Assembly: GCF_000315625.1 (NCBI RefSeq)
Contig: NW_005434653.1
Coordinates: 157,939-221,938 of the forward strand
Length of the DNA stretch: 64,000 nt
Direction of reading: 5' to 3'
Source of the DNA: Guillardia theta CCMP2712
Lineage: Eukaryota > Protista > Cryptophyta
Positions within the stretch are counted from its first letter, which is position 1. Each line of letters opens with the position of its first letter. The translations under genes and the position numbers were made by a program. Positions 1-44,417 of this stretch are shown piece after piece. Under the pieces are notes generated by a model. The model had not been told where the DNA came from. It did no database searches and worked only from the letters and a program-made list of their open reading frames with translations.

Positions 1-541
1 GCCTGAACTGCGCATGTGACCGCACCTGAGCCTCGTTCCTCAGGGCCTCGTCCCCACAGCCTCCGACTCGCCGACGCAATCTTCTGCGCCGTACGGTCCC
101 TCGCCCCAGCCCGACCCGCAGCCTTCCAAGTTCCCGGATGCGTCCATGCCGGACCAGCCATTATCCCGAGCCCAGGACGTGCTGATGGAGGGCCTGGAGG
201 ATGCGGGGCCGGCGGGTTGTGCTCGCCGCGAGTCGGGAGCCCACATTCTGCGCGCCGCGGCACTGGAGTCACGATCATCGGATAGCAGGCAGTCTGAATA
301 AGAAATATTCTGTCAGCGTGAGGGACAAGCAGGCAAGGGAGCCGCTCCGCGGGGGGGGCCGGGGGGGGCTGTTAGGACTCGCGCCATGCCGAGCCTCCGG
401 GAGAAGGGAGGGTGTAGCAACTTTCGCTCCTTTCTCCTGTTGCCATGTTGGGTTTGTCACAGCCTGTGAGGATGAACATCATGGCATCGTAACTGGAAGA
501 GAGCAGCAACAGCCTGGTCCGACTGGCAACAGACAGCACAT
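1..541 (-). pseudogene. Disrupted tandem copy of a SHAQKYF-class MYB gene, cut by the window start
   Basis: Positions 11-250 align nearly base-for-base to 1196-1385 but carry at least 6 short insertions that break the frame. Fragments DQAVAALF, MWAPD, NGWSGM and RNEAQVRSHAQ lie in different frames. Confidence 0.85.
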
Positions 542-1156
542 GAAGAGAGGCATAGTGAGAGTTTCAAGATGCGACAATGGGGAACGAGTTTGTCGGAGAA
601 CTGGGCCCTGGGGCTGATTTCTACTCTCCGATACCTCACCTTTTCAATGGGAAATCATCGGTTTTGACTGGCATCCAACATCGTTTCGGTGGGGGGACAG
701 GATATGCTTCACGACTGCTGACATCTTGTCGGCGAGGCGGGCTTAACAGGACTTCGTAATAAAGACGAGACCAGGCATAATAAAGAACGAGTCATGAAAG
801 AAGTGGGTAATGACTCTACTGTCAGTGTTGTGCAATGTTGACATCGGTTGCGACTTTCATCACCACGAAGCTGTGCATGACTGAAAGACTTGCACAGCTT
901 CAGCATGGGGATTGTAGTGAGATCCTTCAGAGTGTATAATAGGATAAGGAATTTCGTACCGAAAGGGAGAAGTAAAGGGAAGGAAGGCACGCGGATGAAA
1001 GCAATTGTGTTGTGCAAAAGTGGTTTCTTCCTGGCAAGTCTTTTTTTTCATCTTTGATTATTCTTAATGGAATGATTGAAACGTCTACACGAGAATCTAT
1101 GCTCGTATCTTCACAAACTGCATGCAGCTGATAACTTCTGGCATCCTTGTGAGATT

Positions 1157-1597
1157 TTAACCTCCTCGCCTCCAGACCTTCTGGAAATACTTCTGCGCAT
1201 GTGACCGCACCTGAGCCTCGTTCCTCGTCCCCACAGCCTCCGCAATCTTCTGCGCCGTCCCTCGCCCCAGCCCGACCCGCAGCCTTCCCGCCGCATCCTC
1301 CATGCCGGACCAGCCGTTATCCAGGACGTGCTGATGGAGGGCCTGGAGGAAGCGGGTGTGCTCGTCGGGAGCCCACATTCTGCGAGCGATGTGATCCTGG
1401 AGAGGTGAAGGCGACGACGGCAAGGAGAGACAAGGGGATAACGGGGAGGAGACTGAAGAGCTGTCATGCGTGTTGTCTTCGCCGCCTGCCCTCTCTTCGC
1501 TGGAAGAGCAGGGCAGATTGTAACAAGGATGAACATCGAGAGGGAATAGAGCAGCAACAGCCTGATCCACAGAAAGGGAGGAGGACGCAAACGACAT
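1157..1597 (-). CDS. Single-repeat MYB-like transcription factor, SHAQKYF class
   Basis: Intronless ORF from ATG 1597: WAPDEHTRFLQAL...IAEAVGTRNEAQVRSHAQKYF, stop at 1157. Confidence 0.9.
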   Translation of the reverse strand: MSFASSSLSVDQAVAALFPLDVHPCYNLPCSSSEERAGGEDNTHDSSSVSSPLSPCLSLPSSPSPLQDHIARRMWAPDEHTRFLQALHQHVLDNGWSGMEDAAGRLRVGLGRGTAQKIAEAVGTRNEAQVRSHAQKYFQKVWRRGG

Positions 1598-1980
1598 GGT
1601 GGAGAGAATTGCGAGGGCGATCGAATGGAATGAGAAGCAAAGAGACCCTGCGAGGAGCAGTGGAACAAGCGACGGGACTGGGAGCAAATGCTTTAAAAAG
1701 AGGGGCAGGGGGGAGAATCTGCCCCCTGAGAACTCGTTATTTCGATGGGAGACGAGTGGGCTGACAGTGTACGGTTCACGGTTGGCACCCGAGTACGGTC
1801 AACCCACATCGCTTGGACGGGGGAAGGATACAGTTAAAGACTGTTTACGTGACTTGGCTGACACTGAGAGCTTGAGCAGCTTAAAGTGTATCGGCGTCGG
1901 CGTGAGCGTCACCGCCGGTGAGTAGTAGGATTATACTAACTGTACTGATTTTTAACTTTACTAAGACAACTATGTACTAC

Positions 1981-2160
1981 ACCGGGCTGTTCCGCCGCCG
2001 GGCCGGGCGGCCGGCTACGCCGCAGTGAGCCGGGCCGCGCCAGCTCACTGAGCGCCCGGCCCCGCCCACTCAAGGTTGCCGGCCGCCGGGTGCGGTGGGC
2101 CCGGGGCGAGTCAATCCGGCCCGGTCGTCACTGCGGCCCGGCCCGGGAGGCCTTGAGCTG
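1981..2160. repeat. GC-rich palindrome-dense intergenic patch
   Basis: Dense ccgg, gggccc and ggccgg words, plus the ctcactgag hairpin word. No credible coding signal. Confidence 0.7.
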
Positions 2161-2212
2161 ACGAAAGATCCTGGACCGGATGCGTTTGCAAGTCGGATCA
2201 CCTGAGACGTCT

Positions 2213-3570
2213 TCAGTGCGAGGCCGAGAGACCATCCAGCGCTGCCGGCAAGTTTCCTTCAAGGCTTGTTCGCCGAGCGATCCGCCAGCCACCACTGCTC
2301 CCCTCCTTCGAGTCTCCCCCCAATCCCATCACGTCCACCACGCTCTCGTACAGCAAGTCGTACTTGAAGGCTTCCTGGTACTCCTCGAGCGTCCACGAGC
2401 ATACTTTCAGTTCTTTGGCCTTTTCCTCAAGATCTTCCCCAAAATGCTTCATTCTTCGAGAGCTCATCGATGTTGTGATAACAAGTCGCCGATTCTCCCA
2501 GTCACCATGGCGCCATAGCAGACATACACTGTACAAGTCTTCATGTACTTGTGTCCCCTCCACAAACCCATCCAAGGACAGAAAATACTTATGACTCTCC
2601 CCCGCCCATGCTTCAAGAACATTCTCAAGAAAGACGGCTGCCTTTTTAGCATTTGCCTCACACTTTTTCTGTACATCGCCATCAACCTGGTAGATACTGA
2701 CAATCCCCGATTTCCGGATCCGTACGCACATCGTCCGCCATCCTGCCTCCGTGCTCAGTGATTGCATGAAGGACATGGTCGTCATCGTCTTTCCCGTCCC
2801 CGGAGTGCCTAGGATCCATCCCAAACATCCTTCCTTGCACACTTGTTCCTCGAGGAAGCCCCACTGCAAATTGAAGTCTTCCCTGCAGTAGAGCCAACAT
2901 AGCTCTGCTTGCCCAGAGCTGTTTGGTATCAGCAACGACCGATCCAGACAGAATAGTTTGCCCCCCTCCTTATGGCCCAGTCGCCTTCGATCCAATTTTG
3001 TCTCTGTCCAGCGTACGCTTGTCTCCACAGTCCTTTCACGGCCTTCACGCATCTTGTGCGCATTCTGCAATTCCCTGAGGAGTTGTTCCAAACGACGATT
3101 CTCTGCTGCTTGAAGGCTTTGCCACTGTTCGTGCAGGTTCTCCCTCTCCTTGTGCAGGTTCTCCCTCTCCTTGTGCAGGTTCTCCCTCTCCTTGTGCAGG
3201 TTCTCCTGCTTGTTGTGCAGGTTCTCCCTCTCCTTGTGCAGGTTCTCCTGCTTCTTTCCGAGTTTTTCTTTATCTGCTAGTATTTGGTTTTTTCTCTCCT
3301 CCAGATTCATCTGTATGGCCCTCCAGTACTCTCTGTTAGCCCCTTCCTCAACAAGCTTCAGCGCGGCCTCAGCCTTCCTCTGCATAAGTTCCTTAAGCTC
3401 TGTTTGAAGGTTCTCCTCCTGCGTCTCCAGGTTTTCCTCCTGCGTCTGAAGGTTCTCCTCCTGCGTCTGAAGGTTCTCCTCCTGCGTCTGAAGGTTTTCC
3501 TCCTGCGTCTGAACGGTAGGTTTTCCTTCTGCGTCTCAAGGTTTTCTTCATGTCGTCTTCGCTTCGCCAT
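2213..3570 (-). pseudogene. Crinkler (CRN)-like coiled-coil + P-loop NTPase gene, frameshifted and 3'-degraded
   Basis: ATG 3570 gives MAKRRRHEENL. A 5-nt insertion at 3513-3517 shifts the frame inside the 21-nt repeats. The main ORF has LYCREDFNLQWGFLEEQV-GWILGTPGTGKT (Walker A), FLSLDG (Walker B-like), RLVITTS and SWTLEEY, which resemble CRN-type NTPase modules. The 3' end decays near 2300. Confidence 0.7.
3130..3550 (-). repeat. Two coding 21-bp (heptad) tandem arrays, ENLHKER and ENLQTQE
   Basis: Units ttgtgcaggttctccctctcc (about 6 copies, 3130-3250) and ctgcgtctgaaggttctcctc (about 6 copies, 3405-3550). Confidence 0.9.
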
Positions 3571-22258: not shown

Positions 22259-22928
22259 TTCGAAGAGCAGCAGTCTCTGCAACAGCTCTTGCGTTCCTCT
22301 CATCAGCTCAGCAACCACCTTCACAAGCCCCTGCCTCCTGATCCTGGTTGCATATCCTCCGGACACCTGGACATGAAATAAGCGCGTAATTAAGCTTAGT
22401 GTCTGGATTTCTTTCCCTTCCTTCTAGGCATTTATCACCGCACAGGTGCCAATCTTCCTCCTCTCTCAGATAATCATGCTCGTGCGTGATGATCCATCAC
22501 AACTGGTGGTTGTCATCACTTCTATTCCTCCTCCTCTACTCCTCAACTCCTCGCGTTCTCCCTATCCCCCATCTCCACACTACCTGGCCTAGCACGTTCC
22601 TGTATCCTCCTCCCTCGCTTCCTCCCCTCTCTACCATGACGGTACACATGAATCTTGGAGATAGTCACCAATAGTGTCGCCCTCCTATCCCTCCTCCTCT
22701 CGCCCTCTCCCTTCCGACTCCTCCTGGTATCTCCCTGCCATGCTCAATTCCAGGGTTGTCACCACCCCCATATTAATACTTTAAAGTACCCGTCATCCTT
22801 CCCACCCACCTTCATTCACACTTTTTTAGTAAACGGACTCCAGGGGTTTGGCCCGGTCGAAATCAAAATGCAGCACAAACTTGATTAGGTGCGAAGGGGG
22901 CGGAGCAGGGGGAGAGGATCACGGCGAG

Positions 22929-23198
22929 GAGCAGGAGAGCAGGAGAGCAGGAGAGCAGGAGAGCAGGAGAGCAGGAGAGCAGGAGAGCAGGAGAGCAGGA
23001 GAGCAGGAGAGCAGGAGAGCAGGAGAGCAGGAGAGCAGGAGAGCAGGAGAGCAGGAGAGCAGGAGATCAGGAGATCAGGAGAGCAGGAGAGCAGGAGAGC
23101 AGGAGAGCAGGAGATCAGGAGAGCAGGAGAGCAGGAGAGCAGGAGAGCAGGAGAGCAGGAGAGCAGGAGAGCAGGAGAGCAGGAGAGCAGGAGAGCAG
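22929..23198 (+). repeat. (GAGCAGGA)n 8-bp satellite
   Basis: About 33 units with occasional GATCAGGA variants. Confidence 0.95.
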
Positions 23199-23488
23199 GT
23201 ATGGGGAAACGTTCTTCAGATTGTGGGCAGGGCCTTGATGTTTTGGATGATGTTGGAGTGATGGTCGGCAGGGGTGCGTGAGTGACATCGGACTTGGAGG
23301 ACCAACTTTGAGCTAGTTGCAGATTTCAAGAAGGTAATAATAAAGCAGCGAGCAGCGTTAGGATAGGCGTGCTGAGAAGAATTCGCAATGAAGCACAGAA
23401 ATATGGCTAGGAAATGGAATGAAGGATTGTCCGGCAACGTCAGCCTTTCTGAGATTTCAAACAGTGCTTGTATGCCTCCAGGTCTACA

Positions 23489-25642: not shown

Positions 25643-28504
25643 TTATGGCACTTCGTACTTGTGCTCGCCCCAAGCAAGGATCGCCTTGTCTAGCAGGAGC
25701 TTCGCCGCATGCAGATCCTTCAGCTCCACTCGTACCGTGTGAAGTCCCGGTGAGAGCCTCCCGACTGAGACCGACATACCGTGAGGGTCCTCAACCAGAG
25801 TACCGGGCAGTAAGAGGAAGAAGAAGCTCCCGTCCTCTTCAACTTCGCCCTCGCCAGCGTGCCTGTACGCCTGCACCGACAACTGGTATCCCGTCGCTCT
25901 GGAGAGCCCGAAGATGTCAAGGTGGACGAGATGCTCGCTGCCCACGAGCTCCAGCGTTGTGCTCTGGACAAGGTGGATGCGACTGATGTCGCACTTGTCG
26001 TCCCTAAACGCTCTGATGAGGCAGGAGCGGATCGGAACATGGGGCTGCACGTCCGTATAGTAGTCTGACAAGAGCCTCTGCAGCAGCTCCCGGCCGTGCG
26101 TGTCCGGGGGGCCCCAGCCAGTGTTAGCCCCCTGCTTGGGGGGCGCGACGATGGCGAGCCTGTCAAACACGAAGTGCTCGACGCTCTCGATCGCCGACGA
26201 CCCATGCATGAGGAAGCTCTTGGGGAGAACCGTGAAGGTGTAGCCCAAGTTGCAAGCCTCCACCCCGAGGGAAACCTTGTCCCATCCCCAATGCACAAAG
26301 CGATCGTCGTACAGCCCGACGCCGTGGCTCCCCCGCCAGGCGCTCCGGTTGACCACCACGTAGGGCTCGTAGCCTAGGATGTACTTGACCTGGTACGTCT
26401 CCTCTGCCTCCATCCACCTGTCGTACTCAGTTCCCGCATGGAACACACCAGCTTCGTGCCATCTGCCAGTCGTTGACCACATGCCCATGTCAAGTCCGGG
26501 GATCCACACCTGACGCCCCTCGAAGTTTAGCCGCAAGGCCTCCATGGAGATCGAGGCGGGCTCGACGCGAATACGCTGCTCCTCAAGGGAGATGCCGGCT
26601 TCCCTGGGCCAGGAACCGGAGGTCTTGAAGGAGGGGATCACCAGCAGCTCCGTCGGCCCGACCTTCCCGTCCTGGTACGCCTGCCGTATGTTGGACGCCA
26701 GTCCATCCGACGCGAGCATGTCTACGTCCGCGTACAAGACCAAGTCCGTGCGAGCTATGGCGCATGAAATTTTTCTGAGCATGTTGATCGGAAACACCAG
26801 GAGACTACCAGGTTTGTCCTTGTCAGGGCAAGACGTCAGGAGGGTAGCTTCCAGCGTCTTGTTTCTCTCGATGAACCATGGCCCTAGTGTCTGCTGCACC
26901 AGCGTCTTGATCTGCTCTTGCTCTGACATGCTGCGGGCGTAGAAAGCGACCGCCACGTGCTCATTCCACTGCGCCGCAGCATTGATGAGCACGACAGCTC
27001 TGTCAAGGGTCGCGACGGTGGACAAGGTCAAGCCCAGCTCATCTTCTCGCAGCCTCCTGGTTGCTCTGACTGACATGGAGAAAGGAGATCGCTGGTACGG
27101 CATCTGACCCTGGAAGAGAGGGTTTCCGGAGGTCCAGAGGTATGAGACCATGCAGGGCTGCAGGGCTTGGACTTTGCGGGACAAGTACGCGAGCAAAGTA
27201 TCGTCGCTCTCATGCTCTGCGAAGTAGTCGTACAAGACCGACACCATCACCACTTGCTCTGACCATGCGGACGGGACATCGAAGTGTACAACTCCTACAG
27301 AGCCCGTCGAGCCGTCGACAACCACGACACCCGCCTGATGAAAAAGGATGACTTGCTTCTCTTTGTGCCTAAAGGTCAAGTGGACCCTGTATCTGCAACC
27401 AGGCACCAGGCCTATTGCTTTGATAGAAGCCTTGAACGGAACTCCAGCCACGAGATGGTCAGTGCCGGGACTCATCACCAGGTTGCAAAGTACTTCCTCC
27501 GGATGTGGACGGTAGCGAAGCTTCACACTGTCGGAACGGACGAAGGAAGCTTCTTTTGCGCTCCTCCTTTCTGCTGGTAGTCGCTGAGAGCGCGAGAAAT
27601 CGTCCTCAAGCACGCAGATCTCGTTGCACCTGGACACCTTGAGGAACTTGCGGACGGTGAGTTTGGCAGCGATAGAGCTGTTGGCTCGGTTCTCGAGCTC
27701 CGAGACAGTCGCTAATATCAGATACTCGCTTCCTCCCGGAGCAGAGACTCGCACGTCCTGCACATGCTCGGAGCTGTTCATATGCAGAACCAGCATCTCT
27801 CTGGACTGCTCCAACGAGTTCACCTCTGTGACAACGAGGACGAGCAGCAGGTTACCCCCAGTCATCCCCCGCAGGCGGATGGAAATCGACATCTCCCTCT
27901 CCTGCAAGGTCGCATGCTCCATGACCATTGCCGGCTCTGACGCGTTCACCACCCGCACACTGTGATCCCCGATGGCGACAACCTCCAGCTCGTCGCCCTC
28001 CATCCGGTGCAGGAGCGCCATGAATGCATACATACCAGGGCTCGCGTCCTCGTATACGAATGAAAGGCATCTCGAGCTGTTAGATAAGAAATGCTCATCC
28101 ATCAGGTACTCCCTCACTGCGAGCACCTCCATCCCTTGACGCAACTGCACTTGCACCACCAACGGCGCCGGAGCAGGAAGAGATGAGAGGTCGATGTCTA
28201 AGGAGAGCTGCTGCACTGCTGGAGAGTTCACATCCATGACTTGCCAGCGCATAGACCAGCCTCCCTCGTCGGGCGCCAGGGCCACTGACAGCGATGCAGA
28301 CTTGCTGCAGGGGCACAGAGTTCCAGGGATCGGCGAAGAGCGAAGGCGGGTTCCATCAAGGGCAGGGGAGACTTTGCACTGTGGAGAAGAGGGAGACTGC
28401 GAGGAGAAGTGCTCGGAATCGGGGAGAGAGGAGGAGGAGGAGGAGGAGGAGGAGAAGCCTGCCATGATAATCAGAATCCTCGCTGTCATCGCCATCCTCG
28501 CCAT
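25643..28504 (-). CDS. GT49-family (LARGE/B4GAT1-like) glycosyltransferase with repeated beta-rich modules; intronless, 953 aa
   Basis: FPINMLRKI, VLYADVDML (DxD), YEPYVV, YDDRFVHWGWDKVS, GYTFTVLPKSFLMH. Hydrophobic N-terminus. Confidence 0.85.
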   Translation of the reverse strand: MARMAMTARILIIMAGFSSSSSSSSSLPDSEHFSSQSPSSPQCKVSPALDGTRLRSSPIPGTLCPCSKSASLSVALAPDEGGWSMRWQVMDVNSPAVQQLSLDIDLSSLPAPAPLVVQVQLRQGMEVLAVREYLMDEHFLSNSSRCLSFVYEDASPGMYAFMALLHRMEGDELEVVAIGDHSVRVVNASEPAMVMEHATLQEREMSISIRLRGMTGGNLLLVLVVTEVNSLEQSREMLVLHMNSSEHVQDVRVSAPGGSEYLILATVSELENRANSSIAAKLTVRKFLKVSRCNEICVLEDDFSRSQRLPAERRSAKEASFVRSDSVKLRYRPHPEEVLCNLVMSPGTDHLVAGVPFKASIKAIGLVPGCRYRVHLTFRHKEKQVILFHQAGVVVVDGSTGSVGVVHFDVPSAWSEQVVMVSVLYDYFAEHESDDTLLAYLSRKVQALQPCMVSYLWTSGNPLFQGQMPYQRSPFSMSVRATRRLREDELGLTLSTVATLDRAVVLINAAAQWNEHVAVAFYARSMSEQEQIKTLVQQTLGPWFIERNKTLEATLLTSCPDKDKPGSLLVFPINMLRKISCAIARTDLVLYADVDMLASDGLASNIRQAYQDGKVGPTELLVIPSFKTSGSWPREAGISLEEQRIRVEPASISMEALRLNFEGRQVWIPGLDMGMWSTTGRWHEAGVFHAGTEYDRWMEAEETYQVKYILGYEPYVVVNRSAWRGSHGVGLYDDRFVHWGWDKVSLGVEACNLGYTFTVLPKSFLMHGSSAIESVEHFVFDRLAIVAPPKQGANTGWGPPDTHGRELLQRLLSDYYTDVQPHVPIRSCLIRAFRDDKCDISRIHLVQSTTLELVGSEHLVHLDIFGLSRATGYQLSVQAYRHAGEGEVEEDGSFFFLLLPGTLVEDPHGMSVSVGRLSPGLHTVRVELKDLHAAKLLLDKAILAWGEHKYEVP

Positions 28505-38561: not shown

Positions 38562-44417
<5,856 letters not shown>

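Follow-up and report, generated by a model that had tools for sequence, protein, structure and literature searches.

Clusters of short insertions were found restricted to certain non-coding loci of this genome, and they reflect neither a genome-wide neutral bias nor a RIP-like process. One of these clusters lies at the start of the DNA that was analysed, a stretch of 64 kb (C21:157939-221938, hereafter the window; G+C about 53%, 866 N) in an 87.1-Mb assembly of 669 contigs. Its carrier, copy A, is a partial tandem duplicate, no longer functional, of the SHAQKYF Myb gene next to it (copy B), from which it differs by seven inserted blocks and very few substitutions (Table 1).

A dead Myb duplicate and its inserted blocks

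The alignment of A (8-255) with B (1193-1387) was the same in MAFFT, BLAST and a global affine alignment, and it bears out an earlier note on this DNA, in which positions 11-250 had been described as a gapped duplicate of an intact MYB gene at 1196-1385. The two copies share identical runs of 20-36 nt that are split by blocks extra in A. In a six-frame search copy B matched its own locus at 100% and was open, with a Myb domain (PF00249, 27.3 bits, cut-off 24.4) and a translation that contains SHAQKYF, and the match over copy A (C21:157946-158158, window 8-220) contained a TAA stop. Presumably selection keeps copy B intact and A is free to change.

Identity between A and B is about 98% both in 8-255 and in a second homologous stretch, where 12/12 and 24/26 positions agree on the two sides of a 5-to-14-nt replacement. 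The 213 nt of A between these parts had no significant similarity to the corresponding stretch of B (chain score 66 versus 49.6±8.5) and no further match elsewhere in the genome, and a G8CCG8 run is present inside them. Given this unalignable part between homologous parts, A is a mosaic, and the 213 nt need a different or larger event than the blocks described below.

Copy B belongs to a large expansion of single-exon SHAQKYF Myb genes, with at least 99 six-frame matches in the genome, mainly in tandem arrays (C21:111170-115376, C46:380464-384137, C74, C61, C365) and all open except two. No transcript of A or B was found in the 6% of RNA run X9 that was read. The only pile of RNA reads, about 44 in number, matches just 34 bases (window 1184-1217, L001 2684-2717), with a T>C difference and unrelated loose ends, and these reads derive from an expressed paralogue with the same SHAQKYF-coding stretch and not from copy B.

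Table 1. Coordinates in the window of copies A and B, the seven blocks in A and the dispersed repeat copy
Feature	Start	End	Strand	Description
Copy A	8	255	-	Frameshifted, dead duplicate of the neighbouring gene's Myb-domain part
Insertion 1	38	45		8 nt, CCTCAGGG (left-normalised; equivalent to AGGGCCTC at 42-49)
Insertion 2	64	74		11 nt, CGACTCGCCGA (equivalent to ACTCGCCGACG at 66-76)
Insertion 3	91	95		5 nt, GTACG (equivalent to ACGGT at 93-97), yields ccgtacgg
Complex event 4	128	142		15 nt in place of 10 nt of B, net +5
Insertion 5	165	171		7 nt, CCCGAGC
Insertion 6	208	217		10 nt, GCCGGCGGGT
Insertion 7	225	231		7 nt, GCCGCGA, yields ctcgc-c-gcgag
Unalignable stretch of A	256	468		213 nt versus 138 nt in B (1388-1525)
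Second homologous stretch of A	469	520	-	N-terminal part of the gene, versus B 1526-1568
Copy B	1157	1600	-	Open 147-aa frame, SHAQKYF-type Myb domain; template-like counterpart of A at 1193-1387
134-nt dispersed repeat copy	2146	2295	+	Three private insertions

The seven blocks (8, 11, 5, net 5, 7, 10 and 7 nt) add 53 nt in total and none of them is a multiple of three in length. The positions given for them in the earlier note were correct up to alignment-equivalent shifts; the insertion that it had placed near 208-216 is present, but its size is 10 nt (208-217) and not 9. No base of B is absent from A outside the replacement in event 4. Substitutions amount to 3-4 over about 190 aligned bases, which is few, as had been claimed, but more than the approximately two counted at that time; the three clear ones are one G/A transition and two transversions.

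The relation of the blocks to their flanks differs from one to another. For insertion 1, cctgag at 25-30 recurs as its reverse complement, ctcagg, at 40-45, the quasi-palindrome grows from 3 bp to 6 bp with a best inverted repeat of 6-nt arms and an 8-nt loop, and cctc (4 nt) is re-copied. Event 4 includes the 7-nt in-place inversion that had been reported for it, with GGATGCG at 136-142 in A being the reverse complement of CGCATCC at the counterpart in B (P = 0.0045 for the 7-nt inverted match, shuffle test). Insertion 6 re-copies gcgggt and its cggcg pairs with the cgccg of insertion 7 (5-nt arms, 9-nt loop). Insertion 2 can be written as a chain, cga-c-tcg-c-cga, which its flanks explain weakly, and for insertion 5 a convincing local template was not found.

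Raw 38-nt Illumina reads of ChIP DNA from a 2026 study covered window 1-260 (L001 1501-1760) at about 9-14x, similar to the flanks, and among these reads no row with an indel or another letter was seen over this interval; the insertions are thus supported by raw reads. A 454 paired-end contig from 2011, whose loose ends contain loxP linkers, shows the identical sequence over window -119 to 211 and may be source data of the assembly. The direction of the changes was deduced from three outgroup paralogues (L005, L008 and L009), which carry none of the seven blocks. This indicated that the short state is ancestral and that the blocks are insertions in A, and it ruled out the possibility, recognised at the outset, that the longer state is the ancestral one. 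Two further candidates were considered and not retained. Tiny introns or other removal at the RNA level are not favoured by blocks of 5-11 nt without shared ends and by the lack of RNA over A and B in the sampled 6% of run X9. An old paralogue converted in patches would not, by itself, explain the zero-length counterparts in B.

A contig from a 2023 runoff metagenome (run X6), which represents an environmental relative of the source organism, differs from window 291-549 at three points: a single substitution, a 2-nt indel at window 343, within the G8CCG8 run, and a 6-nt indel at window 393.

Insertion clusters compared with other DNA of the genome

Three families of LTR retroelements (4-8 copies each, 20 loci, L028-L047) were sampled and their changes were polarised by majority. 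The copies are 98-99.7% alike with ordinary gap counts, and their private changes comprised 211 substitutions and 12 small insertions, mostly of 1-2 nt; private deletions were at least as many as the insertions, some of these 'deletions' being truncation artefacts. The 7 insertions among 11 events in A differ strongly from this spectrum (binomial estimate, P ~1e-7), and the number of indels per substitution in A is about 40-fold above that in the LTR elements, in agreement with the original impression that the pattern is unlike ordinary decay. The normal spectrum in all three LTR families rules out a genome-wide neutral insertion bias. Similarly, functional Myb paralogues differ mainly by substitutions, dozens of intact Myb paralogues are without such blocks, copy B is clean, and a 2-kb tandem Myb array with 99.2% identity had 13 mismatches and 3 gap openings over about 3 kb.

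Other repeated DNA was observed in and outside the window. A 953-aa ORF with a Glyco_transf_49 domain (window 25643-28504, minus strand) has a 2.8-kb, 87% identical duplicate (C45:257851-260655) with almost no change in length. Two abundant repeat families of about 250-300 nt (window 41958-42207 and 22902-23199) are partly tandem elsewhere, and copies of the former cluster at 251 nt, with a tail of 254-276 nt, shorter ones being few. Reverse-transcriptase elements that are nearly identical to one another, with open frames of about 2,000-2,500 aa, are found within a few kb of many contig ends (among them C7:13941, C17:8363, C63:2134, C64:6280 and C15:1041992) and may be subtelomeric.

Further cases were screened for in 357 kb of this genome, using as the criterion a pair with gap openings at least as many as mismatches, and a few more were obtained. 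These included the 134-nt repeat (window 2146-2295 versus L014: 3 substitutions and 4 private insert blocks), an LTR-flanking repeat (L031 versus L044: 3 substitutions and 3 blocks of 5-8 nt, unpolarised), the edge of a tandem array in L011 and a dispersed element of about 60 nt in L023 and L025. In a dead PEX11 duplicate (L021 1953-2122 versus 2566-2777) identical blocks are split by extra GC-rich sequence. Short palindromes were not clearly enriched across the 64-kb window (arms of at least 6: 19 versus 13.6±4.0; 25 versus 17.0±4.5), and Rfam gave no match for the window and seven loci. A literature search for this phenomenon in algal or protist nuclear genomes returned nothing specific.

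The 60-nt element is present at L021 2877-2911 and as a diverged copy at window 1941-1975 (minus strand); its 35-nt core, for which there was no Rfam match, occurs at at least 40 places in the genome with 97-100% identity and is usually flanked by GC-rich islands of the CCGGGCC/GGCCCGG type. One GC-rich island in the window (1981-2150), with CCGG/GGCC/GGGCCC-type motifs and inverted repeats at 1995-2018 and 2075-2098, sits between the 60-nt element and the 134-nt repeat.

The 134-nt family yielded 133 candidates, 40 of which were scored, and 27 copies were measured by anchored pattern search. Eighteen had the standard 122-nt spacing with no net change, seven were longer (+2, +7, +11, +17, +18, +20 and +21 nt) and two were shorter (-1 and -24 nt). 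The longer copies had several events each, with substitution counts no higher than in the unchanged copies, and the events were concentrated, with at least three each in C8, C132 and the window copy. Compared with the commonest sequence of the family, the window copy is essentially free of substitutions, and its insertions are TCAG (2213-2216), GGCAA (2247-2251) and CTTCAAGG (2257-2264), the last making cctt-c-aagg. The 8-nt palindrome agacgtct of the repeat is extended to ctgagacgtctcag (from 8 to 14 nt) in the C8 copy and nearly so in the window copy. Two copies of the family carry ACGGT after GACGT, and CAG(T), two bases farther along, is likewise present in two. Since all four combinations of these insertions exist, either they had more than one origin or recombination has reassorted them. 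An ACGGT flanked by CGT and C is seen in insertion 3 of A, in two 134-nt copies (C8:18033 and C17:527720) and, on the opposite strand (ACCGT), in the LTR-element copy L046.

The 3' part of the window copy overlaps the end of a 390-aa minus-strand ORF (2213-3385), for which Pfam gave no hit and of which there are about 10 paralogues, 69% identical. A tandem array of a 21-nt (7-aa) repeat at window 3083-3525 covers the 5' end of this ORF and the sequence just upstream.

Anatomy and origin of the events

Many of the events have the form X-n-X'-n-X, in which an inverted copy of 3-5 flank bases is followed by 1-4 bases re-copied. In L031, for example, tctggctggggaaa has become tctggctgg + cccag + tggggaaa, where cccag reverse-complements ctggg, the next five template bases. 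Base-for-base fits with two switches were obtained for L031, for the C8 copy of the 134-nt repeat and for insertion 1 of A. Extension of a palindrome is plain for insertion 1 and for agacgtct and is not plain for insertions 2 and 5.

The templating was examined for a pooled set of 16 events from five loci, which were picked by eye and not blindly and of which those of L031/L044 are unpolarised, with shuffled inserts and random genomic k-mers as nulls. The sum of hairpin arms spanning the junction was 50 versus 38.5±5.2 for shuffled inserts (P = 0.017 for shuffled inserts and 0.009 for k-mers), that of the longest inverted match to the ±15-nt flank 62 versus 52.5±3.0 (P = 0.002 and 0.003), that of the longest direct match to the same flank 60 versus 53.1 (P = 0.02 and 0.01) and that of slide microhomology 29 versus 12.5±3.8 (P<0.0004). 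For the seven events of copy A alone, the hairpin sum of 29 was compared with 24.3±3.4 for shuffled inserts (P = 0.11) and 22.1±4.1 for k-mers (P = 0.05). The expectation that inverted templating exceeds controls therefore holds for the pooled events, but for copy A by itself the fold-back excess is suggestive only.

The best reading of these data, which in our judgement stands at about an even chance of being right, is that the clusters consist of template-switch insertions made at small quasi-palindromes during DNA synthesis and confined to particular loci. The growing DNA strand would quit its template at a short palindrome or quasi-palindrome, use the opposite strand, or its own folded-back sequence, as template for a few bases and rejoin the original template 0-4 nt behind the place where it had left. 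What results would be X-n-X'-n-X, that is, an inverted copy together with a small direct re-copy, appearing as a pure insertion of 5-11 nt or as an in-place inversion; each event would create or lengthen a hairpin, with templates lying within about 30 nt. The reading is favoured by the in-place 7-nt inversion, which is a hallmark of short template switches, and by the presence of the same anatomy at other non-coding loci and not in LTR elements or live genes. It is weakened by the slight hairpin excess in copy A alone, by insertions 2 and 5, which lack a convincing local template, by the ease with which arms of 3-4 nt are found by eye, by the non-blind choice of the pooled events and by the absence of a clear palindrome excess across the window, which gives no confirmation of a pervasive process that writes palindromes. 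The enzyme, the setting (a replication fork, or synthesis during repair) and the cause of the locus restriction are matters that we infer and do not observe.

Known template-switch mutations (Ripley's model; the four-point model of Loytynoja and Goldman, 2017) share with these events the inverted copying of adjacent sequence, in-place inversions, the creation and, for some events, the lengthening of hairpins and the repeated appearance of the same product at a given site. Short template-switch mutations are also the subject of later work (PMC13100816; 10.1101/2023.04.19.537475). The known cases are rare beside substitutions, whereas at particular loci here the events outnumber substitutions by about 2:1 and are almost purely insertional. 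The proposed mechanism is thus of a known kind and it is the locus-restricted, insertion-only intensity that is unusual. We know of no citable precedent for template switching at such density.

The same anatomy would be produced, with a different timing, if all blocks came from one tract of error-prone repair synthesis templated by copy B, in which the polymerase repeatedly dissociated, folded back and re-annealed during gene conversion, synthesis-dependent annealing or break-induced replication. Such a burst is unlikely, yet far from negligible. It would account for the identity of about 98% on both sides of the unalignable 213 nt, which resembles a mosaic product, for the mutual complementarity of inserts 6 and 7, and for the crowding of the 134-nt events in few copies (18 having none) with similar substitution counts. 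As Hicks, Kim and Haber are said to have found in 2010, mitotic gene conversion in yeast raises quasi-palindrome template switches. Against a single burst stand the identical insertion at the same site in different 134-nt copies, in all four combinations, and the two indels and one substitution by which the environmental relative differs in window 291-549. Both observations suggest ongoing, repeated events and favour serial events at unstable loci, which is one possible timing of the template switches.

Repeated double-strand breaks joined by end joining of the polymerase-theta or filler-DNA type are a distinctly improbable source. The signature of polymerase theta is templated inserts of 3-30 nt, taken from flanks within tens of bases in direct and inverted orientation, with microhomology. 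Short inserts from nearby flanks in both orientations are common to both, and the pooled excess of slide microhomology fits; however, 6/7 events in A lose no flanking base and show no accompanying deletion, whereas such repair usually deletes, and seven separate breaks within 240 nt of one copy would be needed. The retention of flanking bases makes end joining with templated filler the less likely explanation. The earlier note had proposed a recurrent local process of cutting and repair, and the similar events at other loci agree with its recurrence and locality, but cutting and rejoining fits pure insertions less well than template switching does.

Insertion and excision footprints of cut-and-paste transposons, in which hairpin opening gives palindromic nucleotides beside remnants of the target duplication, are very unlikely. 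Many inserts can be written as a direct duplication of 1-4 nt that encloses a filler in part palindromic with its flank, and short flank-derived palindromes at the junction and small direct duplications are likewise features of hAT/Transib/RAG-type excision. Here, however, the length of the duplication ranges between 0 and 4 nt, no two fillers are the same and they share no constant terminal sequence, and many of the palindromes are odd-centred, which hairpin opening does not produce; the clustering would also require seven visits to 240 nt, and no such element was seen at the sites.

There is slightly less still to be said for a dedicated RIP-like defence that recognises duplicated DNA and disables it by written insertions, a notion that the earlier note had raised as an analogy and that we do not retain. 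Dead duplicates (Myb A, PEX11) and some repeats are affected, and in fungal RIP too a duplicated gene copy is ruined with few ordinary changes. Fungal RIP acts through C-to-T transitions, however, and not through insertions; such transitions do not prevail among the three clear substitutions of A, and here one copy is affected and other repeats are spared: copy B is untouched, the LTR families of 4-8 near-identical copies are normal, the tandem Myb array at 99.2% identity is normal with its paralogues open, and most 134-nt copies are unchanged. An assembly or sequencing artefact, for which one might point to a reference from the 454/Sanger era and to the N in the window, is practically negligible as the cause of the blocks in A and was rejected on the independent 2026 Illumina reads, which cover the stretch at normal depth with no differences.

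The short inserts may also be set beside the mobile GC clusters of yeast mitochondria and other small palindromic elements (PMC4478555), which are GC-rich, hairpin-forming short insertions in non-coding DNA, as here. Those are 30-60-nt elements with family sequences, whereas the inserts described here are of 4-11 nt and their sequence is specific to the site.

Consequences for this genome

A more far-reaching possibility, which we hold to be improbable, is that this genome possesses a locus-targeted insertional mutator, such as a hairpin-processing nuclease or a switch-prone polymerase, acting at particular chromatin or sequence seeds. If this were true, palindrome-building insertions would enter non-coding DNA much faster than substitutions do, and the mutator would kill stray gene copies and seed GC-rich palindromic islands beside small dispersed repeats.

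To our knowledge, neutral small-indel spectra are deletion-biased or balanced in nearly all organisms studied, with indels several-fold rarer than substitutions. At certain loci of this genome there are more short templated insertions than substitutions and hardly any deletions, while its other neutral DNA is normal. For annotation this carries a warning, in that 'genes' with frameshifts may here be dead copies riddled with insertions. If general, the phenomenon would offer a natural system for high-rate template-switch mutagenesis, and it would be a route to hairpins, inverted-repeat binding sites and GC-rich palindromic islands as well as a cause of local genome growth.
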